A stretch of 62,882 bases of DNA, filler included, from Guillardia theta CCMP2712 (GCF_000315625.1; 5 parts of 5 records of this genome joined end to end with filler, not necessarily neighbours in it); one strand, 5' to 3'. Positions 1 through 45,437 are shown, numbered from the whole stretch's first letter. The notes: generated from the letters alone by a model not told the origin. Program-made: numbers and translations.

Positions 1-2010
1 TTTTAACATCTGAACCTCTTTTACACGGGAAATGAATCTTTTGGTGCTGGTTGGGACTTTGCCCTTTGAACACCCTGGATCCGGAAGACCTCATAGAAGT
101 GTGCCCCAAACACTGTTGCGAAACGTTAGCAAGAAGTGGACTATTAAAACAGGTCTGAGCCAGATCAAGATGCGGGGGGCGGTGTGGATGAGGAGGAGGA
201 GGAGGAGGAGGAGGAGGAGGAGGAGTTTCACAAGAACGATGGATGGCGACGGGGGACAGGAGGAGAGGAGGAGCTGTGGAACCGGAGAGCAGGGAGAGGA
301 GGGAGAGATGGGAACGAGCTCTCACCTTTCCGTTTCTTGGGCGCTTCCTCTTCCTGCTCAGCATCCCCCTCGTGTTCCTCCACCTTAAATGTACCGCTCT
401 CGTCCTCGGCTCCACACTGAACGGAACGAGCGTGAGGAAGGAGGAGGATTGAGGTGCATCAGAGAGGAACGAGGATGGAGGATCGAGGGTGCTGGGTGCA
501 GGTTGGAGGTTGGAGGGTCGCGGAGGAGAGCGATAGTGGGGAGGGAGAAGGAGAAGGTTGGCGAGGAAAGCTTGAAGAGGGGCGAGAGGTGAGCGGGGAT
601 GGGGGAACTGATCTCACCCTCTGACCGAAGTGCGGGCTGAGCAGCTGATTCATCTTGAACATCTGATCCAACATCACGAGTTTGCACTCTCCCCCCTCCT
701 CCCCCCCTTCCTCCTCTTCATCACCATCACCATCACCATCACCATCACCATCACCATCACCATCACCATTGCCATCGTCTTCCTCTTCCCACCCCTTTCC
801 TCCTCCTGCTTAGCGATGACGTACATGAACACGCTTTCTCTTGCCAAAGATCTGCTCCAGCTTCTCATCCACCATGATGAACTGCACAGCTACCATCAGC
901 ATCGCAGCACGTGCGCAATTTCTGCATCATCTCCGCACCCTCTTGTCTTTGGCGTCCTGGAGGTCGTTTTGCTTCACGTAATCCCATATCGCCTTCACCA
1001 CCTGCAGCAGCATCCCATCACCACCCGCTCTCCTCTTGCGCTCTTGTAGCAAGAGCGAGCATGCAGTACCCCCCCTCCCTCCCCCTCCCCCCAACCCACC
1101 CCACCCCTCATGTCCCTCCCCCTTACCTCCGTCCGCTTTCCCGACGGGGCCCCCATGAAATTCGCCAGACCCTCACTGAACCAGTTTGAACCCCAACCTG
1201 CTCCTCCTCTCCCTTCCGCGCCTCAGAGTCAGCAAGCAGAGACACATCATGGGTAGCTATCACCTTTCCCTCCCTTCTTCTTCTCCTTGCCCTTCCTCGC
1301 CTCGCTCTCCGCCTCCTCCTCTTTCTCCTCCTCCTCCTCCTCCTCCTCCTCCTCCTCCTCCTCCTCCGCACTCGATTCCTGCCAGCGATATTCAGTCCTG
1401 CCATCGGATTCTAGCGTCATTACCTGAGCTGCAACGAACTCATCAACCCAATCGCCGATCTCTTGCTTCTTCCCCTCTAAACTCTTTTCACTGAGCCCTG
1501 CCAAAACGTTTAAGAGGCGACGGCTAACGCCAGCAGGGCTGAGGGGGACGAGTGGTTTGATCGTGATGGCGCATAAGAGATGTTGGTGTCGGTGAAGATC
1601 GTCCCCTTCTATCGCCTTCGCTAGATATGTCGAGATTCTCCCTCAAACATACCCAAGAAGAGAAGGCGAAGTACGATTTTGAGGTAGGGAGTGAGGGGGC
1701 GATGCTGGATCAAGCATGACGCTGTGACAGGAGACATACCTAGTTTCTCCTCAAGTTTCCTCCTCGCCATCTTCTTGCTGAGCTCCTCAAGGTTTGACAG
1801 CTTCAATATGGCGAAGAGGGTTTCTTTCAACTTCTCATCGCTGAACCCATCCCCGTCCTTGGTCTCCGCACCATCGGCCTCCTCTTTCTTCACGGCGGTG
1901 CCATTGGAGCTACTTCCTGTGTCCTCGTCCTCCTTCTCCCCCTTCTCCTCCTTCTTCTCCTTCTCCTCCTCCTCCTTCATCCCTTCTTGCTTCACAGCGA
2001 CGTCTGCCAT
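1..2010 (-). CDS. DEK_C + SWIB/MDM2 domain protein (UAF30/spp27/TRI1-like), multi-exon; 3' end uncertain
   Basis: Exon 1 (ATG 2010) reads DEKLKETLFAILKLSNLEELSKKMARRKLEEKLG, which is DEK_C-like. Exons at about 630-990 join to WDYVKQNDLQDAKDKR..FIMVDEKLEQIFGKRKRVH..MFKMNQLLSPH, the SWIB signature. Confidence 0.8.
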
Positions 2011-3219
2011 TTATCACGCTACCTTGGCCCCACCCCACCACCCCACCCCATCAATACCTACTGCTCATCAGTAATCCATGGGTACTACTACCCCACCATC
2101 CGCCTGACTAAACCCACCCCTGTGATTGGGCACTCCACGACCCATCCATTTTGACCCACCCCCATCCCCTTCCCTTCCCGGGGTATATGTGCGGGGGTGG
2201 ATCTAAAAAGAGGGTAGGGGGTGATCAAATGCTATTGAAAGGCAATATATCAGACACATACGGAAATTTAAATAGTATCATACTAGATAAATATACTAGC
2301 ATGAGAGCGTTCTGAATGAGTTGGGAGAAGTCAATCTGATGTTGAGGGTGGGGTACCATGAGAAGAGCAGGTAGGGGTACGAGGGATGGTGTGGTGCTGT
2401 CTCGGCTCCGCCCCCAGCCTTCCCTTAGGGACTTCGAAGTACCCCTCATTTCCCCATGCAATATACCCCTGGTCGAAAGTATTACTACCCTTATTTTCTC
2501 CTGAATTTCTTTAGGTCATGTGGGGTGGGTCCATCTGTCGTAACTGTCATCACCACCTCTCAGTTCAAGAACCCCACCCCCCCAATTTAAACCCGAGTAC
2601 CAAGTCACCCCATTTAGAACACCATACTCATTGTACCACCCCCAAAGAATAAATGATACCCCACAAGTCCCGGTATTTTTACCTCGAATCACCGGGTACT
2701 TGTAATTTTTATGACTACCCTACCTGGAATTTGAAGTCCCCCCTTACATATACCCTCAACTCCATCTTGTAACCCCCTTACAAGATGTCCACCTACCCCA
2801 CTTGAAAAACCAAAATATTGTGACCATATACCCTCTATCTCTAATATTTATCTATTGATACCATAGATAAAAAGCCTATCCCAATACCCTTGCGATTACA
2901 GCCGCTACCCTTCTAAGGACCACCTCTGCTCATTACCCCCAACAAATATCCTCCTACCCCCTTTTATCACCAGATGACTACCCCCCACCCCTCCAATCGA
3001 TTTTCCGCTCCTCTGTCACACCAAAGGCCACAACAAGGCAGATTTCCCCCATGGCGTCTCTTCATATACCCCTACCCCCACACTTTCTATCTCTTTATCC
3101 CCGGCTTCCCTCCCATTTCAGACCTCTACCCCTCTGGAAGTACCCCCCAACACCCATTTTTGACTGCACCCCTGGAAAGAGTGCACTGATGAGTAATGTT
3201 ATTTGTATCAGAGGCGTTA

Positions 3220-3690
3220 TCACCCGGTTCATCATCATCGAGTCGGCCGGGCGGCGTCGGGCCGCCGTGGCCCCGGCTGCCCAGCCCGGGGGCGGCCCGG
3301 GTGGCCCGGCCGGTCGGCGGCCCCGGCAGACTGTGTCACAGTGTGGCATCGGGACGGTCTCCGGGCCCACTGGCTTGAAGGCCGGACTCGAGTCGCCGGG
3401 ACTCCGACGACCTGAGAGCCCGGACCGTCCGACACAGCCTGCCAGGCTGGCAGGGCGGCGGGGCCGGGCCGCCGCCGCGGATCACGGAGTCCCGGGCCGG
3501 TATCAGCCCCGCGGGCCCCCGGGTGCCCGCCGCTTCACTGACGGTCCACGGTCACCCGGGCGATTTACGCGCGGCCACTCGGACCCGGTCCGATCACGGC
3601 CGGGCCCGCCGGAAACTTTCAAAACCGGAGGCTCCGAACTTTCAGCAGTTACGAGCAGAGTCGCCGGGGCGGGTTCGGTAAGCCTTGAAG
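3220..3690. promoter_or_regulatory. GC-rich island between divergently transcribed genes (putative bidirectional promoter region)
   Basis: Very GC-rich and dense in CCGG/GGCC/GAGTC. It lies between ATG 2010 (-) and ATG 3892 (+). Function is inferred from position only. Confidence 0.4.
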
Positions 3691-22800: not shown

Positions 22801-23137
22801 TCAGGTTTCTCCTGCTTGTCCCCTGTCGTTTCCTTTCCTCTAGCTTCTCATGTCCTCTCCCTTCTCACTCCTCCCTCTGTCCTAATTTCAGATCCCATCC
22901 ATCATCCGTCCATCTATATCCCTCCCTCCCTCCCTCCCTCTCTCCCCTCTCCCTCATCATTGTAACCTTCATTGCAGTCGGTTCAAGTTTCCAGCTCGAC
23001 CTGACCCGGTGAGACTCCCGGGCCGGCCGGGCCGGGCCCGGGGCCTTCGTCGCCGGGGCCGCCGCGAGTTACTAGCAAAGGGGTTTTCGGAAAAAAGCGT
23101 TCAGTAAGCATCATAGAGTCGGTAAATTCGACTCTTT

Positions 23138-23186
23138 TACTCAAAGTTAAGTTAAAAATCAGTACGAGGACAATCAGGAGAGTCGA
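23138..23186 (+). repeat. Dispersed conserved motif, copy 1 (TACTCAAAGTTAAGTTAAAAATCAGTACGAG plus extension)
   Basis: 23138-23168 is identical over 31 bp to 41007-41037. The extension TCAGGAGAGTCGA is shared with the 36.2 kb copy. Confidence 0.9.
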
Positions 23187-23472
23187 CTCAGGCTCAGCCG
23201 CCCGGCGCTCGGAGTGACCCGGTCACGGCCGAGCGCACCGTATACCAGGCTACCGCCGCTGGGCGGGGCGGTCTGGGCCGGGCGGCCGCGCCGCCCCGGG
23301 TGACTGAGAGTCGGCTCTTGAACTGAGCTAGTGATCCCAGGCCTGGACGGGGTGGTACCAAAACGCGGTCATTACCAGGGGTCAGTGAAGGAGATGCACT
23401 AACTTTGGAAGAAGGGTAGTTTGGAAGGTCAGGAATGGGGGTAGGGTGGACTCAGTTCGCTACCTTATCGCA

Positions 23473-25037
23473 ATGGGGTGTGCAGCCTCAGCAGTGGTTG
23501 TGACCAGCATGGCGGTCGGGACGACGCTCATGGTGGAGAAGGAGAAGAAGAAGGAAGCGAACCCTGATGAAGTCTTCGAGGACCACAACAAGACAGGACA
23601 ACATGAGCTCAAGTCGAGGAGAAAGTCGTCCTTCACTCTCAAAATGGTCTAAAGCTATTGATAACTTGTTGTGACCACTGATCTTCGATACTTCTGTGCG
23701 TCGCAGGCGCGGCTGAGGAAAATGAAAGACGCTCCAAAAGCATGGCGAAGATCTATCTCTCGACTGAGCGTTGAGAACGGAACATACTGGGACGAAGGAG
23801 CCCACCAGGACACAACAGTGGAAGATGTGGACGAGAAGGAGGTGGAGAAGCAGATCAGACGCAAGAAACGAGAGGAAGAAAAGGAGGCGAAGAAACGCAG
23901 GAAAGCGAGAAGAAGAACAAAGAGCATCACTCCCCAGCCGAGATTCCAGAAAGGAGACGATGCAAGAAAACAAATGTGAATGGCACAAACTCGATTTGAC
24001 AACCCTTTAGGTCGTAGTGAACATCAACAGCGAGGATCCGTCGCAAGCGATGTACGGAAGGTGAGAAATCTGTGCGTTGTCATGATGAGAAGCAGCTGAG
24101 GAGAAACTCAGAGTCGAAAGTCATGAACTCGTGCTGGGCGCTGTCGGGAAGGAGATTCAGTATCAAGTTACTCTAGAAAGTGGGGCGAGGTAGCGATCGA
24201 AGCATTGAGGCTTGTTAAGGAGCTGAGAGATGGTGTGTGAAGGCTGGTGTTCCCCGAGAAGATCTTGAGAAGAAGACAGTCGGAAGTGAGCTTGCCGACC
24301 GAGCAGGAGCAGGAGCAGTCCCAGCCCCCGACTCCATCGGCGGCTAAGAAAAGATGGTTGAACGTGAGGCTTGTTGCAGTGCAAGGATGCTTCCTGTGAT
24401 GACTGAGAAAACTTGCGCAGAGGGCAAGATCGAGTTTAGGAAACGTCTTGGCGGATCTCTCCTCGGAGATCACAAACTTGGCGAGCAGGCTGACTTCGGC
24501 AGGTTCAGTTTCGATTCCACGTGGCCGGATGTCGTTTGATCCGATGTGAACAGGGAGCAAGGCTGCAGAATCAAAGCCAGAGGAAGTAAAGAAAGACGAC
24601 AGCATGAAGAAAGAGGAGGAGGAGGAGGAGGAGGAGGAGGAGGAGGAGGAGGAGGAGGAGGAGATCGCAAAGGCAAAACCAGCGACTGTCGAAAAGAAGA
24701 TTCCTTCACAGAGTGCTAGACACGAGCGGACGATAACGTCAGACGACCTAAACGTCTCCCCTGAGAACAGCGAGGATGAAGTGAGTCGTGTTGCTTGCCA
24801 TCTGCTGCTCAGCTGACACCTGCAGGAGATCGAGCTAGTCTACCATCACATCCAACCTACCGAGCAGAAGATCACCATCGACTACAAGACGGCGAGCGGC
24901 GCTTTGAGGAACAACAAGGTTGACTTCACTGCGTTCGAGAGGTGAGGAGGGGGAATGGGGGAGGAAGCGAAGGCTGTGATACACGACAGCAGGGCTGGTT
25001 CCAAGTAGCCGGGGCAGGATCCGAGTTGGTTTCATAG
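23473..25037 (+). CDS. Hypothetical multi-exon protein with an N-terminal MGCxxS lipidation-type motif
   Basis: ATG GGG TGT GCA GCC TCA gives MGCAAS. Charged exons are separated by short GT-AG introns. No domain recognised. Confidence 0.55.
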
Positions 25038-25285: not shown

Positions 25286-28182
25286 CAGTCCATCCTGACA
25301 GACACGTCACTCAGCCACAGCGAGACGGACGAGTAGTCGACGTCGCCTTCATAGCGATGCACCTCCTTATCGTTCACCCCGATCACTATCATCGCCGGGA
25401 ACGTCTCGATGGTGTACAGCTCGCAGAGCAAGTCGTTACTCTTGGGGACGACAGCAAACTGGAAGACCTCCTGGAACAGGAGCGACATGTAGCTCCAGAT
25501 CTGCGGCGTCGTCTCCAACTCAACGAAGAGGATGGCGAGGGGGAGCGAGCGGTCGGCGACCTCTGCCATGTCCTGCGAGCGAATGACGGGGAGGTCCTTG
25601 GAGGGAGCTGAGAAGTCCACGACCTCGTCCTCGTGCAAGGCGACGACTAGAAACTTGCAGAGCTCTAGGAGGGAGATCTTGCCTTGGAACACCTTAACGG
25701 CATCCTGGTTCGGAAACTTGTGGAGGATGAGGCGAGGGAGGAGGACGGGATCTATCCCATACTCCTTCATCATCTCCTCCTCGTCCACATGGACGCAGCC
25801 GAAGACGATCCTGTGACGAAAGATTCTGGCAGCGTAGGAGAAGAGCTTCGGGAGGCTCATTTTCGCTGTGAAGAGCATGACGTGCGGCCTGTCCGTCCTG
25901 TGGGCTCGGAACTCCAGCAGGCGCTGATGGTTCAGCCACATCCAAAGATCGTCGTCCTCTCGCACTCCTCCTCCTATGGACATCTGACTCATTCCGAAGG
26001 ATCCGGAGGAGCGGAACGAAAGTCTCGACCGTTCGTGAGCATGGAGGTTGGTATCGGACATGCTCCTCTCGAGTCCCTTCCTCCACTCCTCGCTCCTCTC
26101 CTTCCCTCGGAGCACATCGACGGCCCTGTGCCTGAAAGATACGTTGGTCCTCGACCCGTTGCTGCTGCCCGATGGTGCCGAGAGGAAAGGAGGCGCAGGG
26201 ACCTCGAGCTCTTCCTTGCCTTCCTTCTCTCCCTCCGACACTTTCGTCTCCTCCCCCTCCTCCTTCCTCCTCGTGGGCGACTTGGTCAAGCTCGTTACAG
26301 CCTCCGTCACAGCATAGCCGAGCATCGCCATCAGAGCAAGGGCGAGCACAACGGCGTGCAGAGGGTTCTCTGCAGGGTGTGTAGAGAGGAAGGAGACGAG
26401 GACCAGAGCGGGAGGGAGAAGCTTTGCAAGCACGACGAGAGGAGAGAATCTGATCAGGAGCAAGACAGCAAACAGCGGGAAGATCAGCACCGGGTTCCAC
26501 AGGAGCACTCCCTCCACCCACTTGCCGATGCTCGTACACTCAGGGGAAATCCATGAGACCCAGGCCTCCACGAACCGCCGGAGGAGGCTGGCCAGCATCC
26601 GCAGCATCCCATGGCAGTGCGAGGAGGAGAGGAGGTGGCTCAGCTGTGTGATCTCGTGGCAGATCATATCAAGAGGGAGCATATTGAGGATCCCAGAAGT
26701 TATGGCGACCTCCCTCGGGCTGCTGAGGATGGCGAGGAGGCCGCGGGAGAGGAGGGGGCAGGAGAGGTAGACCTCGAACACGATGCGGATGAGCACGTCG
26801 ACTTGCATCACGTACAGCAGCAGGTAGTAGTCCCGAAACACCAGGAAGATGCTGTCAGGCTTGCAACGGTTCCAACCTGCCTCTATCCTCGCCTTGGTCG
26901 CGTCAAAGATCCACTTGAGGTTCTCCTCCAGCCTTGCCTTCTCCCGCACGTTTTCGGGCAGACCGGCATCACCCAGCACGTGCTGGTCGAACGTAGGCAG
27001 CAGCTCCTCGATCACGTTGCTGCAGGCCTGCACTAGAGTCTTCATGGAGGGAGGGAGGTCAGAGCAGTCGCGCAGGGGCATCTCCACGTCCTCCAACTCC
27101 CTCACAGCCCGAGCAGTGATGTTGTGCCTGGCAGATTCAGCCCTCAAGGAGATGAGAGCGCGAGCAGCTGCATGCACGTCGTTCAAGCTAGGAACGAGAT
27201 TCTCCACCAGGTTGGCAAGCTCTCCCCCTGTCACCAGACGGCTCAGCATCCCCCTCTTGGGCATGACTTGGTTGATGAAACCCCGTATCCTCTCGATGAG
27301 GGACGTGTAGTCTCCGTCCAGCTCTTCGTACGCCAGCTCTGCCAGCTCCGTCTCCGCCTTGTACGGTCTGGTCTTGGGGTAGGGAAGGCAAAAGATTCTG
27401 TTCTCCATCATCCTCTCCTGAACATAGTCGATCACCCGGTCGTGCATAACCAGCTCCTCGTTCGCTTCGTCTCCCAGCTTCCTCAAGAACCTTGACGGGT
27501 AGTCCTCGCAGCGATCTCTGCTGCTGTAACTCTGCACCAGCCACACGATGCTGCTGGCTAGAAACTGCTCGTCACTGATGTTCCTGAACACCTCATCGAA
27601 CATCACTACGTCGCCCAAGAATTCCACGTCCAGCTTGTTCACTTTGCGCATCGTGTTGTAGAAGAAGACTGACGACAGCATGGCAGTCAAGGCAACCATC
27701 TTCGTATCGTAGACCTTCGTCCCTCCTGGCGCTCCCAAACCTTCCGAGTCGACCAAGATCGTCATCGTACCCTTCGGCACGCATGTCTTGTTGTTTGACT
27801 CGCAAGCGCCCTGCTCTTCCTCCTCCTTTTTCTCCTCCTCCTCCTCGGGCAGCTGGTGGATCCACAGGCCTTTAGTGAACCCCTCGTCTCCACTGCTGAC
27901 CTCGAACACCCTCGACCTTCCTACCAGCGAGTTCATGAAGAAACTCTTGCCCGTCCGCGCTTGCCCGACGATCCCTATGGTCTTGAGCGTTTGATTGATG
28001 ACACTCGGGGAGCGCAGGAAGGCGATGCCTTCAGGATCGACTTCCAACTTCCCCGAACGATCTCGAACGAGCGATCGAGACCTGATAGGCGTCGATTCAT
28101 TCACATCTTGGTGACCGTGTACTCCTGCCCCGTACGAGGAAAGGACAAAGGACAGAAGGAGCGTTCCAGTAAGCAGAGTCAT
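25285..28182 (-). CDS. Guanylate-binding protein/atlastin-family GTPase with signal peptide, TM segments and C-terminal thioredoxin-like folds; intronless
   Basis: G1 GQARTGKSFFMNSL, G2 FTKGLW, G3 LVDSEGL, and LSSVFFYN. Hydrophobic cluster at about aa 455-630. C-terminus FGCV..EYGI..LPRLI and LYTIETFPAMIVI..HRYEGDVDYSSVSLWL. Confidence 0.85.
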
Positions 28183-28901
28183 CGCTCCAGCCACAGGTTT
28201 GTTGTAGACTTTGTAGTTTCTCTCTGGTGTTCAGGATTTGCCTTCTTGGGGTTATCTCATATTCCACCCTTTACCTACCCTCCTTCTAGCCAGTTTCAAT
28301 TAGCAACATTCGTTCCGTTTCTTCCCTCGCCCATTCACCATACTCTCAACCTCAAAGACACTTCAATCTTCTCTTCTCATAGTTGCCATCACTTTCACAC
28401 CTTCATCTCTCACCGATCATGATCTCCTCTCCTCTCCTCCTCTTCTCTCCTCCATATCTTACACCCTGCATTTCGCCCTCCCTTCTTCCCCACCTCTTGT
28501 GGGGGACCAAAAAAACAGACTCGATTTTAAAGATCTTTTTTTCTCTTTTACAGACAAAAGCGTTTAATTCTTTTTTTTTAAACCCGCCCATCATCCGAGA
28601 TGTCCGAGTGCAGCCGGGCCGCCGGGGGGGGGGAGGGGCCGCCGGAGCCGCCGCCGCAAGCCGGGCCCGGTCCCACGGTGACCGCTGCACCGTTACAGGG
28701 TCTGATCGAGTCACTGGGGTCTGACTGCTCCGGATCCGTAGTAAGAGCACCATGTGACTCTGATGATAGTATCAGCGATCAACGTGTTTATTTACCATCA
28801 TTCCACGTAAATTTTCTCATCTAGTTAAGGTTACAGTCAATCAATTTAAAAGTGACGCTACTCAGTCAGCACAGGCGGCTCGGGGGGCTGCAAGAAGAGG
28901 A

Positions 28902-35945: not shown

Positions 35946-36187
35946 GATGTCGACACGGCCCGGCCCGGGTCACCATCGCACCGGGTGCCGAGCTGAGGCC
36001 CGGCCCGGCCGGGCCCGGCCGCCGGGTGGTTGAACTCCGACTCAGGCTCGTGACCGGCTGGCAACACTCCTCGGACACTGACGGTTGCACACTGGGCGGG
36101 GCCCACGAGTCTGGCCGCTGAACCGGCGGTGTGGTGGCTAAGTACGATCATGTTGGCCTCTGACGACAGTGTCAGGGTCAAGCCTCC

Positions 36188-36239
36188 TCGACTCTCCTGA
36201 ATCTCCTCGTACTGATTTTCAGTAACTTAACTTTGAGTA
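36188..36239 (-). repeat. Dispersed conserved motif, copy 2 (inverted, 3-nt insertion)
   Basis: The reverse complement reads TACTCAAAGTTAAGTTActgAAAATCAGTACGAGgagattcaggagagtcga. It lies 40 bp downstream of the ART-ankyrin stop codon. Confidence 0.9.
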
Positions 36240-36279
36240 AAGACTGAGCTCGTCGATGTCGATTGGCATTCACTCTTTA

Positions 36280-36288
36280 TTACTTTTG

Positions 36289-36380
<92 letters not shown>

Positions 36381-39300
36381 CAGCAGCATCAGCATCATCA
36401 GCAGCATGTAGAGCATAAAGCTCGTCAAGTTCTGTTCCCGCCTCTGGATTGAGCGCAATCTCTCCAGCAGATAAGCTCTCCCCCAGCACACCCTTGACAA
36501 CATCCCAACGCCCTCGTCGCCTTGCATGGTCGGCGCAGGTTCTGCCGTAGGCATCCTTCCTAGCGACGAGCTCTGTTCCTCCGGCATTCACCAGGGCTCT
36601 GACCACATCTACACAACCCATCGAACATGCTGCATGCAACAACGTCCTCCCATGCTCATCCGGAGACATGAACGTCTGCCAGCGCTCCTGAAGCTCTGCC
36701 AGCAACAAACTTCCTTGCGTGTTGCCGGGGCACATGATGAGGAAGCACATTCTCAGAGCACGAAGGTAGACATCGTCACACTTTAGGTACTGAGACATTC
36801 TTTTCGCCGTGTCTGTCTGAAGGTAGACTTCTGGACCAACCAGCCTCAAGGCTGTTAAAATAGTCCCTGCGTTCTCCTCGTTCCTCATCTCTTCAAAGCA
36901 CATCAGGGATTTGTTGTCCTTGCACAGTAAGATTTCCTTTCCAAAAAGCTGCACCAATACCTCAAGTGCAGCCTGGCTTCCACTTGTACACGCCTCGTGC
37001 GCGCACGTCCTACCATTCTTGTCCGCGCACATGACCAGGTCCTTGCCCCCTAGCTCCAGCATGGCCTTCAGCCCCTCGACGTCTCCACTCGTACACGCCT
37101 CGTGGAGGCAGGTCCTACCATTCTCGTCCGCGCACATGACCAGGTCCTTGCCCCCTAGCTCCAGCATGGCCTTCAGCCCCTCGACGTCTCCACTTGTACA
37201 CGCCTCGTGGAGGCAGGTCCTACCATTCTCGTCCGCGCACATGACCAGGTCCTTGCCCCCTAGCTCCAGCATGGCCTTCAGCCCCTCGACGTCTCCACTC
37301 GTACACGCCTCGTGCGCGCACGTCCTACCATTCTTGTCCGCGCACATGACCAGGTCCTTGCCCCCTAGCTCCAGCATGGCCTTCAGCCCCTCGACGTCTC
37401 CACTCGTACACGCCTCGTGGAGGCAGGTCCTACCATTCTCGTCCGCGCACATGACCAGGTCCTTGCCCCCTAGCTCCAGCATGGCCTTCAGCCCCTCGAC
37501 GTCTCCACTTGTACACGCCTCGTGCGCGCACGTCCTACCATTCTTGTCCGCGCACATGACCAGGTCCTTGCCCCCTAGCTCCAGCATGGCCTTCAGCCCC
37601 TCGACGTCTCCACTCGTACACGCCTCGTGCGCGCATGTCCTACCATTCTTGTCCGCGCACATGACCAGGTCCTTGCCCCCTAGCTCCAGCATGGCCTTCA
37701 GCCCCTCGACGTCTCCACTCGTACACGCCTCGTGGAGGCAGGTCCTACCATTCTTGTCCGCGCACATGACCAGGTCCTTGCCCCCTAGCTCCAGCATGGC
37801 CTTCAGCCCCTCGACGTCTCCACTCGTACACGCCTCGTGGAGGCAGGTCCTACCATTCTCGTCCGCGCACATGACCAGGTCCTTGCCCCCTAGCTCCAGC
37901 ATGGCCTTCAGCCCCTCGACGTCTCCACTCGTACACGCCTCGTGGAGGCAGGTCCTACCATTCTTGTCCGCGCACATGACTAGATCTTTGCCCGCGATCT
38001 CCAAAAGGATCTTCAGAACGACAGAGTGTTTGTTTTCTGCAGCTTCATGCGCGCAGGTCCTGCCGTGTAAGGATCGAGTCAAGATCAACTTGACCCCTCC
38101 AGCTTCAACGGCGACTCTCATGGCGTCCAGTCGTCCGCGTGAGCAGGCGTCGTGCAGGCATGTTCTACCTTCGTCGTCTTGTATGTGAACAATTTCGTTG
38201 CCCGCTACCTCTATCAGCGCCTTCAGCACCTCAGCAGACCCGTTCTTACAAGCCTCATGCGCACCGGTCCTCTGGTTTCTCCGAGACATCAAGGCAAGCT
38301 TTTTGCCTCCGACCCCCAACACTACCCTGAGCGCGTCCGCGTGTCCGTTGTCGCATGCTAAGTGCGCGCAAGTCGACGAGTTGTTTCTGATTTCCCAGAA
38401 AAGCTCTTCATTGCCTGCCTCAGCCGCGAGCTTTACAAGCGTCTTCAAGACCTCCGCTTGTCCGTGCTCACAGGCAACATGGGCACAGGTGTTTCCCAGA
38501 TCATCTTTCCACTTTAGAATCTCAGTTCCCTTGAGTTCAACAAGCAGCAAAACTAGATGCACCTGCCCGTACTCACACGCTGCATGCAGCACGGTTGTCC
38601 TGGTCTTGACGGTTTGAAACACCAATGTTGCTCCCGACTCAATCAGCTTTCGTGTTGTGTGAGTGTATCCCAAGGAGATTGCAAGTTCGATGTAGCTGCT
38701 CCTCGTGTCACTGTACCTCATGCTTCCATCCAGCTTATGGCCTGCGAGCTTGAGAATCTGTAGCAGATCCGCCTGTCCCCTCTCGACAGCTTCAGCAGCG
38801 GCGGATAGTTCCCATCGATTGATCGTTGCCGGCCAGAGACCCAGCAGCTTGCATGTCTCAGCAGCTGCCTCTGCTCGCTCCTGGTCGTCAGTGTCGACAG
38901 CCCATACCTTCCTTGTCAGGTGAGCTAGCTTGCGCTGGTGCACCATCCTCAGATCCTCCCTGACTAATCGGTCGCACGCGTCTCCAGACGTGTGCTTCAA
39001 CCAGAAGTCTAACTTGTTCATGGACATCTTCTTCAGATTCGCTGCCTGGGTGAGAGCTTGGATATGGAACGCGTCATCATTGAATTCATGAGCCTTCGAC
39101 TCCCGGTACACCCTCAACAACTCATTGCACTCGTCGGTGATAGACTGCTTCAACTTCCAATGATTACCTTCATGTATGTCCCAATCGCTCTTGGAGAGTC
39201 GTTCGTTTACCTCCGCAGACGCCATCACGACATTGAGATTGGACTCAATATCCTCCACTATGTTGCTGATCAAGGCCATGAAGAGCTGTTTCCTCTTTCC

Positions 39301-40886
39301 CAGTATGTCTTCGATCGTCGAACAAGTCATGTTGGAGTTGATCTTCAAAGGCAACACACGGACCAGCACTCCGTTCCCGAGCTCCCGCATTTGAGGCTTC
39401 TTGATGAGTTCGAGGTAGGACAGCGGGGGATACAGTATTTCCTCTTCATCTGGGTACTGAGAAAGGAACTTGACCGAAGCTCCCCGGTCGACGGCCCCAC
39501 AAGAGATTTCAAACACAGTCGGGTGATCCCCTCTCGTGGCATACTCCAGCGCAACTTGGACGTCCGTCGTGGTACTCATCATGCCCAGCTCGACTCCTCC
39601 TGACACTCCGTACTGATCCTCCTCCAGGAACTCCCGAGGAATCTGCAGGCCATGAAACCCGCGGTAGACCACTCTCTCCTTGGGCAGGACCGTCACCTGG
39701 GACAACTTGATGATGCCGCTGACGATGCAGAAGATCGTAGTCGTGTACTTGTTCCCTCTGAGGGCAGCGACCTCGGCTGATTTAGCTCCGTTGCTGATGT
39801 CGGAAGGGTTCCGCAGGACTGTGTTGTACTTGACGAACATCGGACCTGCTCGGGCATTGAAGTAAGATGCAACACGTCTCATGTAGGACACAGCATGTTT
39901 CATGTGAGACACTACATGTCTTCAGTAAGACACAACATGTCTTATGTAAGTTACAACATGTATCAAGGGAGACCCTCTGACTGTCAAAGTACAACAACTT
40001 CCTCCTCACCTGTGTAGAGCTGGAGGGCGATCACCTCCTCCTTCGCAAGTCCTGCCATGATGACGTGGGGCAACTTAAGGATGTCCTCTGCCGCTTGGAT
40101 ACGCCTCTTGCCCACAGAGTGCTGCTTCCTCCTCTCTGCGTCCATGACAGAGGACCACTCCTTCATCGGAGTTGTCGTGGATCCATAGTTGTGCGAGAAG
40201 AACTCAACATCGGAATCCCCTTTCATGCAGTGCTCGTTTCTCATCCCTGCCATCAGATCGGCCGTTGGTAACCCGATGTCCTGGATAAGCCCATCGTGAA
40301 ACTTCGACAACTTCCCAAAGACAGCCATCTTGCCCTCCTCCATGCAAAATTTGGTGTTCTCGCAGGCATCTGCTCTTGTGTTCCTTTCGCTCTTGTCTCT
40401 GGACCTCACTTTCATCTTCGCTGCCACTGCCATCAACACATCGGCAAACTCCGTCACCCACTGTTTGTCGTCACAATCGCACAATCCGGCGAGCGGACTG
40501 TCTGGCGTTCCTCCTGGGATGAGTTCAGCTAGAGACTGCAGGATGCCCTGCTGGGCAAGAGCTTGAGACTTCAGGCTGATTTCCCATTCCCTAGCGATAG
40601 CGTCCCGATACTCTGCAAAAGATTCCTGGCGTTCAGAATGAGCGCGGAGAATGTCCTTGGCTATGTTCAAGTCTATGCTGAGCTTGCTCTCCAAGGAAGA
40701 GACGCTCCCAGCGCCTCCAACCTGCCCTGCATTCTTATACCCGTCGGACAAGTCAGCTAACTCTGAAAGCACGCCAGTCGGGAGCGCCCAACTTGTATCA
40801 TCGGGGGATACCTTGTTCTTGCGCGGAGAGCTCCCTTGATGCCTGATGCAGAAAGCTCTCTTCGCTCCCTTGATGCAACTCATCAT
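36280..40886 (-). CDS. R-S-E clade (ARTC-type) mono-ADP-ribosyltransferase fused to a long ankyrin repeat array; 2 exons (intron 39846-40009), about 1480 aa
   Basis: Splicing gives IALQLYTG|PMFVKYNTVLR. Catalytic motifs are VYRG, MSTT and SQYPDEEEILYPP. Many G-x-T-x-[LA]-H-x-A-C ankyrin units follow. Confidence 0.9.
36977..37980 (-). repeat. 105-bp coding tandem repeat x~10 (35-aa ankyrin units), near-identical at DNA level
   Basis: Unit GKDLVMCAD[K/E]NGRTC[L/A]HEACTSGDVEGLKAMLELG is visible in both DNA and protein. Confidence 0.97.
39862..39966. repeat. 21-bp degenerate tandem repeat x5 (GTAAGACACAACATGTCTTAT) inside the ART intron
   Basis: Five aligned units with an ACATGT-like palindromic core. 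Confidence 0.8.
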
Positions 40887-41006
40887 GCCTGATGCTGGGA
40901 GACTGTTGAGCTAACTCTACCTCTCCTCCACACTCCCCTCCACCATCGCCTTCACTTCCACTCTTATCCCAAGGACTTATCCCAGGCCTCACTGTGATCA
41001 AAAATA

Positions 41007-41037
41007 TACTCAAAGTTAAGTTAAAAATCAGTACGAG
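41007..41037 (+). repeat. Dispersed conserved motif, copy 3
   Basis: Identical to 23138-23168. It lies 120 bp upstream of the ART ATG and is inverted relative to copy 2. Confidence 0.9.
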
Positions 41038-41546
41038 CAGTTATGTCTCGACCTATCAGGCTGGGTGGCCCCGGCAGTCCGATCCGGCGGACCGGCCGGG
41101 CCGGGCCGGCGGAACTGGGGCTGTAGGTTTGCCGGATAGGATCCTGCGAATCTTCAGTGCAGCGCACCGCCCAGCAGCAGTGAGTACTCGGAAGGCACTG
41201 ACGACTTGCACGAGGGGTCACCTACATGTATTATATCCCCGTCATTTTATAATACTTGTACGGACCACTGCTGGTACAAATGATCGAATATTGTTCGTGT
41301 GTATAACTTTTTAAAATTCGCTCAGCCTGTACCCCACCAGAGGTCCCAAACGTCACACCATATACCCCCACTAATTCTACCCCCCAATCTGTACCCCCTT
41401 GGTCCCACTACCCACATATTCCCTATCTGAACCCCCATGTATCCCGTGTCGGTGCCCCCATTTCGTACCCTACCCCCATCTGTCCACCCCACCGTGAAAA
41501 GACGGTCAATTGCCGTCAAGCATTATTCACATCAACGCACGTAGGC

Positions 41547-44500
41547 ATGCTGGCTCGTTGCGGGCTCATAGCCTCGCTCGTGTGCCATGCCTTCGCTCAG
41601 TATGATGGGATGACGGTCATCGGAGTCTCTGCCCAGACGTTTTCATACATGGGCAAGAATGGTCTGATCCAGCAAGATCCGAACTCCCAAAAGCTCACTT
41701 CGATCTACCGGCTGAACTTTCAAACAGTCGAAAGTGTGTTGATACAAGTTCTGCAGTCATCCAATGAAATTTACATAGTATCAAAAGGAGGGAATTATAA
41801 GGTTCTTTCTAGCTCATTGACAAGTCTCATCTCATCGTTTGCTGGAGAGACGAGTCTAGGGAAAATTATTTTGCAAAATGGAATTGTGTACGATCCCTCA
41901 ACGCAAACATCTACTGCAATTGATACCAGCAATCAGTTTCAAGCAAGTTTTGTCAGTAGAACTTTTTTTGCTGGCTTTGTTTCATCAACAGATTCAACAC
42001 AGCAATACAAAATCTACGACACGAACTCGGCCGGGCGATTCAGCTTTGGAACTTGCAGTGGGCCAATAATGGTTGCGCTTGACAGCACAACCATTCTCTT
42101 TGGTAGTTGCTCATCAAATTCCGATGCGCTGCTGGACACAAAAACGGGAGCGCGATCAGCCGTTTCATCTCCCCTCCAGTTCTCTTTTTCTTTTTCTGCC
42201 GGACTACATGCAGAAGTTGATGATGGAGTCATTTTCTTGTCTTCATCGTGCCCCTTTGGTGGAAACATGAGCGATCGATTTCCTTCAGGAAGCAACTACC
42301 GAATCTGCCATGTTTCTCCTGCTGGAGTAGTTCAAGGTCTTTGTGACAGCGACTTTGCAATTTCTCAGTATTCGTACTATGGGTTCTCTGCAAACCGACC
42401 AGCGCAATTGTTTGTTTCGAAACAATACGTAGTGGTCATGGAGGTCCAATCTGTCGGTTACGTCAAGTTAGGCGATCCCACCAAGAGAGTAGCATATACA
42501 GATACGAACACCATTTTATGCATGGCACTTGTAGATGATGTGATCTACTTCCAGGTAGAAAAGACTGATGGAAAGCTCTACCTTGGAATGTATGATATGC
42601 CAAGTGCAAAACAAATCCTTTTCTCGCCTGTGGACACTCGTTGGGATTACCTGATTCCCTTATCTTTTCCTCTCAACGTGCTACTGCCCCTTAAAACTTA
42701 CAGCGGTGGATCGAACAGCACAAGCACTGCAGCTATCGTTGGTGGATCGATCGGAGGCGTTGTTGCCTTGTTGCTCCTCTTCCTTGGCTTTCGGTTTGCG
42801 AGACAGGGGAAGTCCGGGGTACCCTTGCTTGATGTTCTGTTTGGATGCTGTGACAGGCGGAGAGCAAAACGATCTACTGCTCAGACGAACAAGGTGCAGA
42901 AAAAAGGTTCAAACACCGCGATTGAAAGCGCAGAATTAAACTTTGCTTCTTCTCAATTTTCTAATACCGACTCCAAGATGTCGGAGCTGGGAGAGATCGT
43001 TTTGACAGGGACTGACTTGTCGTCCATGGATGACAAGACGTCAGACCTCGAAGAGATGGTGTTCACAGGAACGCCTTGGGTACAAGATGTTGCTGGAAGT
43101 GTTGCCAGCTGTGTCCTCAGCATCGGACAGGCAGCTCCAATCTTCGGAAGTATCTTCGTGATCCTAGGCGAGATCAAGAAACATGTTGATACCTACCGAG
43201 CTGCCGAGCAAGAGTGTCAGAGAATGTCAGCATGGTGCTCGGGAGTGATGGTCAGCATTGCTAGACTCGCCGAGGAAGTGAAGAGCCTGGATGAGAGCAC
43301 AGAACAACTGCTCGACCAAGTTGTTCTCAAGCTCCAACAGTTTCGTGATCTTATCACTTCTCGCTTGACCTCCCAAGGGATTGGAGGCCGTTTGTATGCC
43401 TTCTGGACATCCAGCGGCTTCCTGGTAAGTGTTGCTCTCTGAACAGCAACCCTTCTGATGATGACGTGGCAGAGCCAGTCCAAGGAAGTGCAAGCACAGC
43501 TGGAGCTGGTCATGAGCAACCTGATGCGCCGACTGCAAGCAGACACGCGTGTGGAGGTCAACCAGATCTTGCAGCGCTCAGCTCTCCTGCCGCAGATGGA
43601 CAAGCAGCTGACTGGCATCATGGATCAGCTGCAGGACCTGGGAGGTGAAGCTCGAGGAGCTTCTTGTGTTGTTCTGACAGTCAGCTATGTCAGGTGAGAT
43701 TCAAAGCCTGCGGAATGATGTGAACAAGGTGTTGGAACAAGCAAGTCGACTCAGCGGGAAAGAAGCTTCCAAGAAGCGACGATCGTCCAACCTTGAGCGC
43801 TTCTCTATCGCCGCATCGCAGATGCAGATCGAGGCAGAGCCCTTCGCTAAGGGAGGGTCCTGCCTGGTGTACCGGGCAAAATACTCCAACATGCTTGTCT
43901 GTGCCAAAGTGTACGACATGCGAGGATACAACATGACTCAGATGCGTCAAGCTCAAGACAACTTCTCGCGCGAGATTGACTTGCTCTGCCGCTTGTCTCA
44001 CCCCTACGTCCTCCGCATGTTCGGCATCTGTGCAGACAACCCCACGAGTTCCGATCCTTGTGACTGAACTAGCTCAGGTACGAGGAGAGGGGCGAAGAGA
44101 CTGAGAAACATGTTGGACCATCGCACGAGGGTTTATGACGAGAGCGCAGGGAGGAGATCTCCGAGACTACATCGACGCTCGCGGGGTGCAAAGTGAGGAA
44201 GAACGTATCAGGATCATCACGGAGCTTGCTTTCGGCCTCGATTATCTACACGCCAAGGATGTAAGAAGCAGCTTCGATGCTACTCAGCTGCCAAGACTGA
44301 CAACCTGCAGATTGCACATAGGGATTTCAAGAGTCGGAACGTCCTCCTGACCATGGACAAGACTTGCAAGATCTGCGACTTCGGGTTGTCGAAGGAGACA
44401 GGCAACGACACGACCGCAGGTTCAAGCCTCGGCACTCCTGCATGGTCAGCCCCTGAGATCTTGAGAGGAGAATGTCGAGAGGTAAGATAAGATGCGAGCC

Positions 44501-44906
44501 AGAGTCGCTGGTTCCCTGCCCTTGTTTCCAGTAGCTGAAGCTGACGATCAGGTCCAAGAGTACCTCCGAGCTGACGTGTACAGCTTCGGGGTTGTCGTGT
44601 GGGAGGTTCGCGCATAAGCGTCGCACGATCTAGAGTGACCTGGTTGCCAGCTTGAGACGGGCCGCGTTCCCCATTCCGAATGCGTCAACGTGATCGAGGT
44701 CAGTGCGCTCCCGCTGACTTGTCAACCGTCATCACCTGACATCTTTTTACCGTCAGATCATCACCGTCGTTTGTGTTCAGCACAAGATGCTGGAAATCCC
44801 TTCGACATCCTCGGAAAAGATCTCAGAGCTCATGAAGAGATGCCTGGTTCCCGAGGGCGCGAGCAGACCCAGCATGACGCAGATCCTAGAGCTCATCGGG
44901 TCGTGA
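41547..44906 (+). CDS. Receptor-like TKL protein kinase: signal peptide, ~375-aa beta-rich ectodomain, one TM helix, MLKL-N-like helical domain, kinase; apparent +1 frameshift at about 44040
   Basis: Signal MLARCGLIASLVCHAFA and TM IVGGSIGGVVALLLLFLGF. Helical APIFGSIFVILGEIKKHVDTYRAAEQECQRM. Kinase motifs AKGG, VCAK, HRDFKSRN, DFG, GTPAWSAPE, DVYSFG and RPSM. Stop TGA at 44904-44906. Confidence 0.85.
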
Positions 44907-44985
44907 AGTTGTTGAACTTGTTCTGCCACTACAAATCTATCCGATCAAGAAACTTGAACTTGAATTTAATGATGAGTCTCCTTCG

Positions 44986-45009
44986 CTCCAAGTTAAGTTA
45001 AACTTCAGT
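44986..45009 (+). repeat. Dispersed conserved motif, copy 4 (degenerate)
   Basis: CTCcAAGTTAAGTTAAActTCAGT has three mismatches to the core. It lies 80 bp after the kinase stop codon. Confidence 0.65.
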
Positions 45010-45437
45010 GGACCATCAGCCTCAGTCCAACTCCCGATGTGACTCCGGACCGTGCTCGGCAGCCGGGCCGCGGCCGCGGCCGCGGCCGCCCCGCGTGACT
45101 CAGTGACCGTACCGTACTGCCACGGTACACGGTACTGCCGGGCAGCCCGGCGGGCCGGGGCCCGGGAGTCGGAGGCAGTAGGCCGTCAGGTAGGCCGTGC
45201 CATCTGGAATGATGTGGGGGCCGCATGCGNNNNNNNNNNNNNNNNNNNNNNNNNNNNNNNNNNNNNNNNNNNNTTAATTAATTAANNNNNNNNNNNNNNN
45301 NNNNNNNNNNNNNNNNNNNNNNNNNNNNNTCCCTCTCTCCCTCCATCCCCGCTCCCTTCCTCCCTTCCTCCGTCCCTCCCCCCCTCCCTCCCTCTCCCTT
45401 CTCTCCCTCTCCCTCTCCCTCCGTCCCTCCTCTCCTG

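Follow-up and report, generated by a model that had tools for sequence, protein, structure and literature searches.

A divergently transcribed ADP-ribosyltransferase-ankyrin gene and a frameshifted receptor-kinase gene in Guillardia theta, flanked by copies of a multi-copy mRNA 3'-end element

We analysed a stretch of 62,882 nucleotides, filler included, from Guillardia theta CCMP2712 (GCF_000315625.1), hereafter the window, in which positions 20569-45229 constitute the genomic piece examined here. This piece, which we take to be nuclear DNA, has a G+C content of 45-63% and numerous microsatellites, and an open reading frame (ORF) scan confirms that, as the original prediction from this DNA had stated, it contains two large genes that diverge across a 660-bp spacer from ATG codons at 40886 (minus strand) and 41547 (plus strand). 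The first encodes an ADP-ribosyltransferase (ART) joined to ankyrin repeats, the second encodes a membrane receptor that carries a four-helix bundle and a kinase, and copies of a motif with a 31-nt core lie after the stop codon of each gene and in the spacer between them. The original prediction had taken this arrangement for a co-regulated and possibly mobile immune or cell-death module bracketed by the motif. Based on the data presented here, we consider it probable that the two are ordinary, separately transcribed neighbour genes and that the motif is a genome-wide element of mRNA 3' ends rather than the boundary of a module.

The ART-ankyrin gene lies on the minus strand and consists of two exons. 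Exon 1 (40010..40886; 292 codons plus 1 nt) encodes a conserved N-terminal region and the first part of the ART fold up to ...ALQLYT/G, and it is followed by the sole intron (39846..40009; 164 nt, GT-AG, GT donor at 40009-40008), most of which is taken up by a 21-nt tandem repeat spanning 39862-39965. Exon 2 (36280..39845, stop codon at 36282-36280) encodes the core of the ART domain, a helical middle region, approximately 20 ankyrin repeats and a poly-Ala/poly-Asp tail. We set the splice by tblastn with a transcriptome-derived ortholog from Hanusia phi (P0001), in which the junction reads LQLYTG|PMFVKYN, and the resulting ortholog-guided junction (40010|39845) replaces a splice at 39912 that the ends of the ORFs had suggested. 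The spliced coding sequence measures 4443 nt and 1480 codons with a single terminal stop, and the gene is therefore intact. Its ortholog shares 55% identity with it over 276 amino acids of exon 1 and 66% over 658 amino acids of exon 2. Within the ankyrin region, positions 36979..37993 (minus strand) comprise a young tandem array (unit length 105 nt or 35 amino acids, 9.7 units, 96% matches) whose units alternate between CLHEAC and CAHEAC and between DENGRT and DKNGRT versions. The poly-Ala/poly-Asp C-terminal tail is encoded by a CAG/CAT microsatellite at 36289-36407 on the same strand.

The identity of this gene as an ART fused to ankyrin repeats, which had been proposed from the sequence alone, is borne out by Pfam, by the ortholog and by solved structures, and its motifs place it in the arginine (R-S-ExE) type. 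The arginine motif YRG lies in the sequence VVYRGFHG, which is identical in the Hanusia ortholog; the Ser-Thr-Thr element lies in MSTTTD, which is kept in the ortholog and aligns with the STS region of Tre1; and the ExE element lies in PDEEEILYPP, which aligns with NEAEVLYPP of Tre1 (6dre_B) and is also kept in P0001. The nearest solved chains to the domain are those of Tre1, HopU1, ExoT and rat ART2. When the exon-2 piece alone is compared with Pfam, Ank_2 is matched with an E-value of 6e-92 and the ART domain reaches 22.2 bits where the cut-off is 22.3, a slight shortfall that arises because the intron splits the domain. A protein search yielded 34 relatives, the best of which is from Hanusia phi (72% identity), followed by proteins of Hemiselmis and Rhodomonas and, more remotely, of the haptophyte Prymnesium. 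Most of these relatives carry precomputed PF01129 and/or PF03496 assignments, and among them the same ART domain is joined to ankyrin, LRR, WD40, HEAT/ARM, SPRY or EF-hand modules. The gene is a member of a large cryptophyte/haptophyte family of ART fusions. The N-terminal region had no match in JGI metagenomes, and the literature searched held nothing on cryptophyte ART-ankyrin proteins.

Like the known R-S-E ARTs, which include the vertebrate ecto-ARTs (PF01129) and the bacterial effectors Tre1, HopU1 and ExoT, the Guillardia protein has its YRG, STT and EEE elements in the expected order and spacing, and its ExE region aligns to that of Tre1 (...E.E.LYPP...). Unlike them, it is an endogenous algal protein without a signal peptide or a secretion/injection signal, and its ART domain is joined to a conserved N-terminal region of about 276 amino acids and to some 20 ankyrin repeats. 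The protein would be a cytosolic mono-ADP-ribosyltransferase of the arginine type, and the long ankyrin array, part of which expanded recently, would presumably recruit its substrate.

The receptor-kinase gene lies on the plus strand and comprises eight exons, with GT-AG junctions throughout and introns of 40-72 nt. Exon 1 (41547-43424; 626 codons) encodes a signal peptide, a beta-propeller, a transmembrane helix, a Ser/Asp-rich disordered stretch and the four-helix bundle. Exon 2 (43473-43644) encodes a predicted helical, 'brace'-like linker that is kept in relatives such as the protein P0090, and exon 3 (43685-44077) encodes the end of this linker and the N-lobe of the kinase with its glycine loop, VAIK-type lysine and alpha-C glutamate. 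The remainder of the kinase is encoded by exons 4 (44150-44260), 5 (44311-44481), 6 (44552-44605), 7 (44651-44698) and 8 (44757-44906, stop codon at 44904-44906), all of which are shifted by +1 from the frame in which exon 3 begins and reveal their HRDFKSRN, DFG and APE motifs only when read accordingly. Translation of the gene, for which we left the kinase frame unrepaired and read both sides of the break separately, shows that the frame is intact as far as ...FGICADN and that a +1 shift is then needed to continue into ...PILVTELAQGGDLRDYI and the motifs just named. The break falls at approximately 44040-44050 in exon 3, and the unshifted frame ends at a TGA codon at 44065-44067.

Two metagenome contigs from ENA project PRJEB17505 (L001, positions 1-2497, and L002, positions 1-3483) are about 90% identical to this gene, collinear with it including the introns, and near-identical to it in exon 2; they derive either from a related strain or species or from a paralog. 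At the break, both have one base fewer and stay in frame, which indicates that the window carries a 1-nt insertion. Bridging of the break by a tiny intron was considered and dismissed, given that no GT...AG pair of workable length exists at about 44030-44060 and that the relatives are collinear with a difference of one base only. The insertion is also covered by independent reads. Four sequencing runs were mapped over positions 39700-45229, namely X11, an independent Illumina DNA run from a chromatin immunoprecipitation (ChIP) library, X10, which consists of raw RNA reads, and X7 and X13, which are RNA-like contig sets. X11 covers the break at approximately 14x with no indel reported.

The related contigs carry lesions of their own in the kinase exons, in the form of in-frame stops at 43912 and 44075 and a TGG-to-TAG change at about 44601, and L002 additionally suffers from indels that break the frame of exon 1 in the part linking ectodomain and transmembrane helix. 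Their decay is independent of the frameshift in the window. In pairwise comparisons with L002 that rest on small substitution counts, the ratio of non-synonymous to synonymous rates (dN/dS) is lowest in the bundle at 0.07, rises to 0.13-0.27 across the kinase exons and reaches 0.61 for the ectodomain, a pattern that fits a gene constrained until recently and now decaying, or one surviving as a truncated product. As it stands, the copy in the window would make at most such a truncated product, consisting of receptor, bundle and kinase stub. RNA from it is scarce, with a depth of 0 in X10 and two contigs of about 165 nt at a depth of about 2 in X7.

We considered whether this truncated product could still be functional, in that a membrane protein without its kinase might serve as a decoy, as a regulator or as a constitutively 'unbraced' membrane-active protein, in which case selection would tolerate or even favour the absence of its kinase. 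The strong constraint on the bundle is what such a function would leave behind (2 non-synonymous versus 6-8 synonymous changes between the window and L001/L002, dN/dS 0.07-0.09), and all lesions found 3' of the bundle fall in kinase exons, independently in both lineages. However, the exon-1 indels of L002 lie upstream of that region, between ectodomain and transmembrane helix; the kinase exons too have a low dN/dS, as recent inactivation of a once-complete gene would give; RNA is near-undetectable, as expected for a premature stop upstream of four introns; and the ratios stem from small, pairwise counts. A functional truncation therefore seems unlikely to us, and the low dN/dS of the bundle, which could mean that the truncated product is still in use, counts among the points that stand against our view that the receptor gene of the window is most likely a young pseudogene.

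Word-index protein searches with exon 1 of the receptor gene, whether whole or restricted to the bundle, returned no match, and an exhaustive search returned homologs in two separate regions of the exon. In the protein, the ectodomain occupies amino acids ~30-370, the transmembrane helix ~400-425 and the bundle ~530-626. The first region (amino acids ~50-370) matches proteins of about 370-400 amino acids, and its nearest relatives, near-identical copies aside, include proteins of 279-400 amino acids that belong to no Pfam family. Its model, made with AlphaFold2 (AF2), is all-beta with a predicted template-modelling score (pTM) of 0.76 and matches beta-propellers at E-values of about 1e-7 with a probability of 1.0, the best match being an eight-bladed design (TM-scores 0.48/0.55). 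The three ectodomain relatives whose contigs we inspected lie on gene-dense, prokaryotic-looking contigs (L005 10001-11203, L006 6001-6840 and L007 4201-5400) among neighbours that include SecA, DprA and glycosyltransferases, and from these sequence matches the propeller may be of bacterial origin.

The second region is a conserved helical domain (amino acids ~480-628) with the signature G..VP..G...LK.H.D....EEC.RLSVWC...AFWTS. It occurs behind fasciclin (P0051) or ephrin-receptor-like/EGF ectodomains (P0077, from Baffinella), and it is also present in a WW...DEAD-helicase protein of Baffinella (P0063). In P0040, P0052, P0062 and P0090 the bundle is followed, about 110 amino acids on, by a kinase, and as far as sequence goes the intervening ~110 amino acids up to the glycine loop are conserved and heptad-like in the window (exons 2-3), P0090 and P0062. 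The kinase of P0090 is complete and of the active type, with a VAIK-type lysine, HRD, DFG and APE, and is nearest to CTR1, DLK/MLK and FGFR. The family would thus have the order variable ectodomain, one transmembrane helix, four-helix bundle, helical linker of about 110 amino acids and a TKL-type kinase that is predicted to be competent, and it is possibly new.

The original prediction had called this protein an MLKL-like receptor kinase, of which the membrane receptor, the four-helix bundle and the kinase all stand, while homology to MLKL_N is no more than the best lead. Several lines of comparison point in this direction. The AF2 model of the bundle has a core predicted local distance difference test (pLDDT) above 85, and in Foldseek the chains of the MLKL executioner domain reach the top probabilities (0.87, 0.69 and 0.66; TM-scores 0.44-0.50; E-values of at least 1.1). 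VIA-align superposes the bundle on MLKL residues 2-102 with a Z-score of 7.5 (root-mean-square deviation 2.9 Å, 84 residues, 17% identity), on the N-domain of the NLR Sw-5b with 8.1 and on the coiled-coil of MLA13 with 7.5. In a language-model Atlas search, the best named cluster carries MLKL_N (score 0.94, 187 shared features), with further clusters of MLKL_N/MCAfunc, SesA and PigL_N, and a shape search with the bundle retrieved a fungal N-terminal-domain protein (TM-score 0.48). Weighing against the assignment, the best Foldseek E-value on the bundle is 0.9 and non-significant; designed or generic helical bundles score equally in VIA-align, in which Z-scores below about 13 are weak for helical bundles; Pfam gave nothing consistent and no MLKL_N match on 25 bundle sequences; and designed helical proteins were the only PDB sequences that a bundle profile retrieved. 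We therefore regard a bundle of the MLKL_N/HeLo type as the best lead, one that is not established.

In comparison with MLKL itself, the effector of vertebrate necroptosis that also has plant counterparts (PF22215), the family appears to have the same order of four-helix bundle, helical linker of about 110 amino acids and TKL-group kinase, and the P0090 kinase finds its nearest counterparts among Raf-like and mixed-lineage kinases. Unlike MLKL, in which the bundle forms the free N-terminus of a soluble cytosolic protein, the Guillardia protein places it about 100 residues behind the transmembrane helix of a type-I beta-propeller receptor, preceded by a signal peptide and a 370-amino acid ectodomain. 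Furthermore, the kinase has its VAIK-type lysine, HRD, DFG and APE both in the exons of the window and in P0090 and hence is no pseudokinase, the copy in the window is frameshifted, and MLKL_N is not matched significantly at the sequence level. Because its kinase is of the active type and its bundle is tethered behind a transmembrane helix, the receptor is not a member of the MLKL family in the strict sense. With the TKL-group receptor kinases, such as the plant receptor-like kinases and their animal counterparts, it has in common a signal peptide, an ectodomain of the ligand-binding type, a single transmembrane helix and a cytoplasmic kinase; it differs from them by the conserved four-helix bundle and helical linker between membrane and kinase and by ectodomains that are swapped among family members, from the beta-propeller of this copy to fasciclin in P0051 and ephrin-receptor-like/EGF in P0077.

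We now turn to the motif that accompanies both genes. A scan of the piece with its 13-mer CAAAGTTAAGTTA, allowing up to 2 mismatches, finds 4 occurrences where 0.18 are expected, a count that none of 100 shuffles reached. Copy A (core 36206-36239, minus strand) lies 40 nt past the stop of the ART gene in sense orientation and is identical to copy B at 30 of 31 positions apart from a 3-nt insertion. Copy B (41007-41037, plus strand) lies in the 660-bp spacer, 121 nt from the ATG of the ART gene and directed away from it, and copy C (44984-45014, plus strand) lies 77 nt past the stop of the kinase gene in sense orientation; it has diverged to 21 of 31 positions shared with B and retains the AAGTTAAGTTAAA core. 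These are the three places at which the motif had originally been noticed. Copy D (23138-23188, plus strand, with a 31-nt core at 23138-23168 that is identical to B at 31 of 31 positions) stands 13 kb outside the gene pair, within the intergenic region between two other diverging genes; the ATG at 23474 follows some 290 nt further on. B and D can be called orphans, in that they occupy divergent spacers, have no sense gene upstream and are directed away from the start of the minus-strand gene on their left. The length of about 31 bp given in the original prediction holds for the core; copies A (36180-36258) and D (23120-23195) have approximately 55 nt in common. CCGG-type simple sequence follows all four copies. 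At copy D alone, a 7-bp hairpin (AGAGTCG...CGACTCT, from 23115-23135) lies directly upstream and the palindromic GAGAGTCGACTC directly downstream (23176-23188). The piece also contains, at 25288-28230 on the minus strand and 8 kb from the ART gene, a single ORF of 981 amino acids with a guanylate-binding-protein (GBP) N-terminal GTPase domain (Pfam E-value 5e-20), after whose end the same scan finds no copy of the motif.

The mapped reads reveal how widely the motif is distributed. DNA depth in X11 is about 610+560 reads on 41007-41037 and about 5+5 elsewhere, which corresponds to roughly 100 times single-copy depth, a rough estimate of copy number given that the library is a ChIP library. This excess does not extend beyond the core. 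In the RNA-like sets X7 and X13, the 31-mer occurs in at least 14 listed contigs of differing length and of depth up to 671, and it mostly lies 10-50 nt from the contig end, for example at 1550-1583 of 1599, 2699-2729 of 2742 and 925-955 of 976 nt. Raw RNA reads of X10 read on from the core as GACAAAAAAAA (10 reads), with a fuller continuation of GACAAAAAAAAAAAA, and the contigs continue as GACAATCAGGAGAG, whereas DNA reads continue as GACAATCA (63 reads). Reads that cover the core of copy B proceed into GACAAAAAAA, and the flanks of copy B have an RNA depth of zero, so that the RNA on its core derives from other loci. The genomic copies of the motif have no downstream A-run, and since the DNA reads continue differently as well, the poly(A) in the RNA reads was added to the transcript without a template.

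An A-run is thus added to the RNA about 4-5 nt past the motif core, and the motif is a multi-copy, genome-wide element that marks the 3' end (poly(A) site) of many genes, highly expressed ones among them. A role as a spliced leader or other 5' element is ruled out, as the poly(A) follows in sense orientation, and a structured RNA element is likewise ruled out, as folding of the four motif regions gave no structure better than shuffled sequences (z-scores -1.2 to +0.6). At Rfam gathering thresholds the piece gave no match, and a 24-nt motif core had none in JGI metagenomes. At the locus itself, copies A and C are likely to be the poly(A) sites of the ART and kinase genes, respectively, a role that their sense orientation and their distances of 40 and 77 nt from the stop codons fit, and copies B and D may, by their placement, terminate upstream or antisense transcripts.

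Some observations sit less easily with this assignment. The start of untemplated poly(A) downstream of the core is seen for the family of copies as a whole rather than for copies A or C individually; with next to no transcripts from the two genes, no RNA read shows cleavage at either of these copies. Since a ChIP library supplied the copy number, the figure could be distorted if the ChIP target prefers the motif. In addition, if the genome, which we take to be 87 Mb in size, holds about 100 near-exact copies, two perfect ones within 18 kb amount to a local excess that is left unexplained, with the caveat that the window itself was picked because of the motif.

This clustering is one of several features that would be expected if the motif were instead the conserved end of a small mobile element, comparable to a miniature inverted-repeat transposable element (MITE) or a short interspersed element (SINE), that carries a poly(A) signal and whose copies record insertions rather than selected gene ends. 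The multi-copy DNA depth, the ~55 nt common to copies A and D, which go well beyond what a poly(A) signal needs, the CCGG-type sequence after each copy and the orphan position of B and D in intergenic spacers could all be seen in this light. Against such an origin, high depth is confined to ~31-45 nt between unique flanks, neither terminal inverted repeats nor target-site duplications are present around the four copies in the piece, no genomic A-run exists, such that the poly(A) must be added to the RNA, and the motif stands at the transcript ends of many abundant mRNAs. We find a mobile-element end improbable on balance, and it would in any case be compatible with the motif serving as a poly(A) site.

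The motif resembles the known poly(A) signals of eukaryotes in being A/U-rich, unstructured, placed just 5' of the cleavage site and oriented in sense after stop codons. These signals are short, being AAUAAA in animals and UGUAA in Chlamydomonas. By contrast, the motif has a core of 31 nt, extended up to about 45-55 nt in some copies, instead of a hexamer, and it accompanies a subset of genes, being absent, for example, after the GBP-like gene. The literature searched contained no description of the motif sequence or of Guillardia poly(A) signals, and an element of such unusual length is possibly new. Going further, one might propose that some genes of this lineage end in a conserved poly(A)-site cassette of unusual length (31-45 nt) and, separately, that cryptophytes possess a family of single-pass surface receptors that wire swappable ectodomains (beta-propeller, fasciclin or EGF/ephrin-receptor-like) through a transmembrane helix to a membrane-permeabilising bundle of the MLKL/HeLo type and an active TKL kinase. 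Each receptor would then be a one-protein 'sense and kill' device, related to the necroptosis machinery yet found outside animals, plants and fungi, of which the copy in the window has recently been disabled. We hold this combined proposal to be an unlikely one.

With the function of the motif in hand, we return to the question of whether the two genes form a pair. The notion of a module bracketed by the motif does not survive, given that many transcripts carry the motif at their 3' ends and that copy D stands elsewhere. Nor is a mobile insertion apparent, as the locus showed neither target-site duplications nor terminal repeats nor a composition island, and the existence of an expressed ART ortholog in a second genus speaks against recent insertion. 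With regard to recurrent adjacency, tblastn with the ART domain found no match within 10 kb on either side of two Baffinella bundle-domain genes, a weak test comprising two loci in distant relatives. One of these relatives presents an arrangement of its own: on contig MU646505.1 of Baffinella frigidus, an ankyrin-repeat gene (L004 17404-22107, plus strand) lies 2.5 kb downstream of the P0063 gene on the same strand, and tblastn detects no ART domain in it.

Other features that had been thought to set the pair apart hold in part. The exons are indeed long (3.6 kb for ART exon 2 and 1.9 kb for kinase exon 1); since the unrelated GBP-like neighbour also has a single ORF of 2.9 kb, however, long exons are not special to the pair. 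Similarly, the introns of the kinase gene are not filled with repeats, as claimed, whereas the ART intron consists mostly of its 21-nt tandem repeat. As to co-regulation, both genes are essentially without RNA in X10, X7 and X13 and in the RNA-like contig sets of the species, and words from the ART gene are absent from the listed sets of this kind (~13 rows).

Such silence in standard cultures is what inducible genes would show, and it can be counted in favour of a functional sensor/executor defence pair that is co-regulated from the common 660-bp spacer and might move as one. So can the head-to-head arrangement, the defence and cell-death roles that an R-S-ExE ART and an MLKL_N-like bundle play elsewhere, the fast-evolving ectodomain (dN/dS 0.61), the recently expanded ankyrin array and the GBP-like GTPase gene 8 kb away. 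Nonetheless, a frameshift leaves one of the partners broken, the ART gene is old and conserved, with expression in a second genus, the two Baffinella bundle loci have no ART nearby, the motif serves 3' ends in general and recurs elsewhere in the piece, signs of insertion as a unit are missing, and head-to-head neighbours are common in compact genomes. We accordingly judge such a defence pair to be very unlikely. The locus resembles the head-to-head NLR pairs of plants (RGA4/RGA5 and RRS1/RPS4) in its divergence from a short common spacer, but neither gene is an NLR, one partner is broken and the adjacency is non-recurrent in the two relatives checked. Adjacency is what speaks for pairing; co-regulation and mobility are not supported, and the reading of two ordinary neighbours with separate transcription is the one that we favour.

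The spacer contains one further feature. A C-rich stretch at 41363-41477 (plus strand), 70-180 nt 5' of the receptor ATG, holds four copies of TACCCCC, a word that has 5 matches in the window where 0.98 are expected and that reached 5 in 2 of 100 shuffles. The fifth match (23437-23443, minus strand) is directly upstream of the ATG at 23474. The stretch may be a promoter or an element of the 5' untranslated region.

Rejection of a motif-bracketed immune module at this locus spares the effort of following it up and directs attention to its separate parts. Cryptophytes and haptophytes possess R-S-ExE ARTs joined to many kinds of repeat domain, on which we found no literature in the library searched. 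A long poly(A)-site element, odd beside the short signals of other eukaryotes, would serve as a terminator in genetic tools for cryptophytes. Lastly, if the bundle of the receptor family is truly of the HeLo/MLKL type, the hardware of regulated cell death would reach another eukaryotic supergroup, and it would do so in a new, receptor-tethered form.

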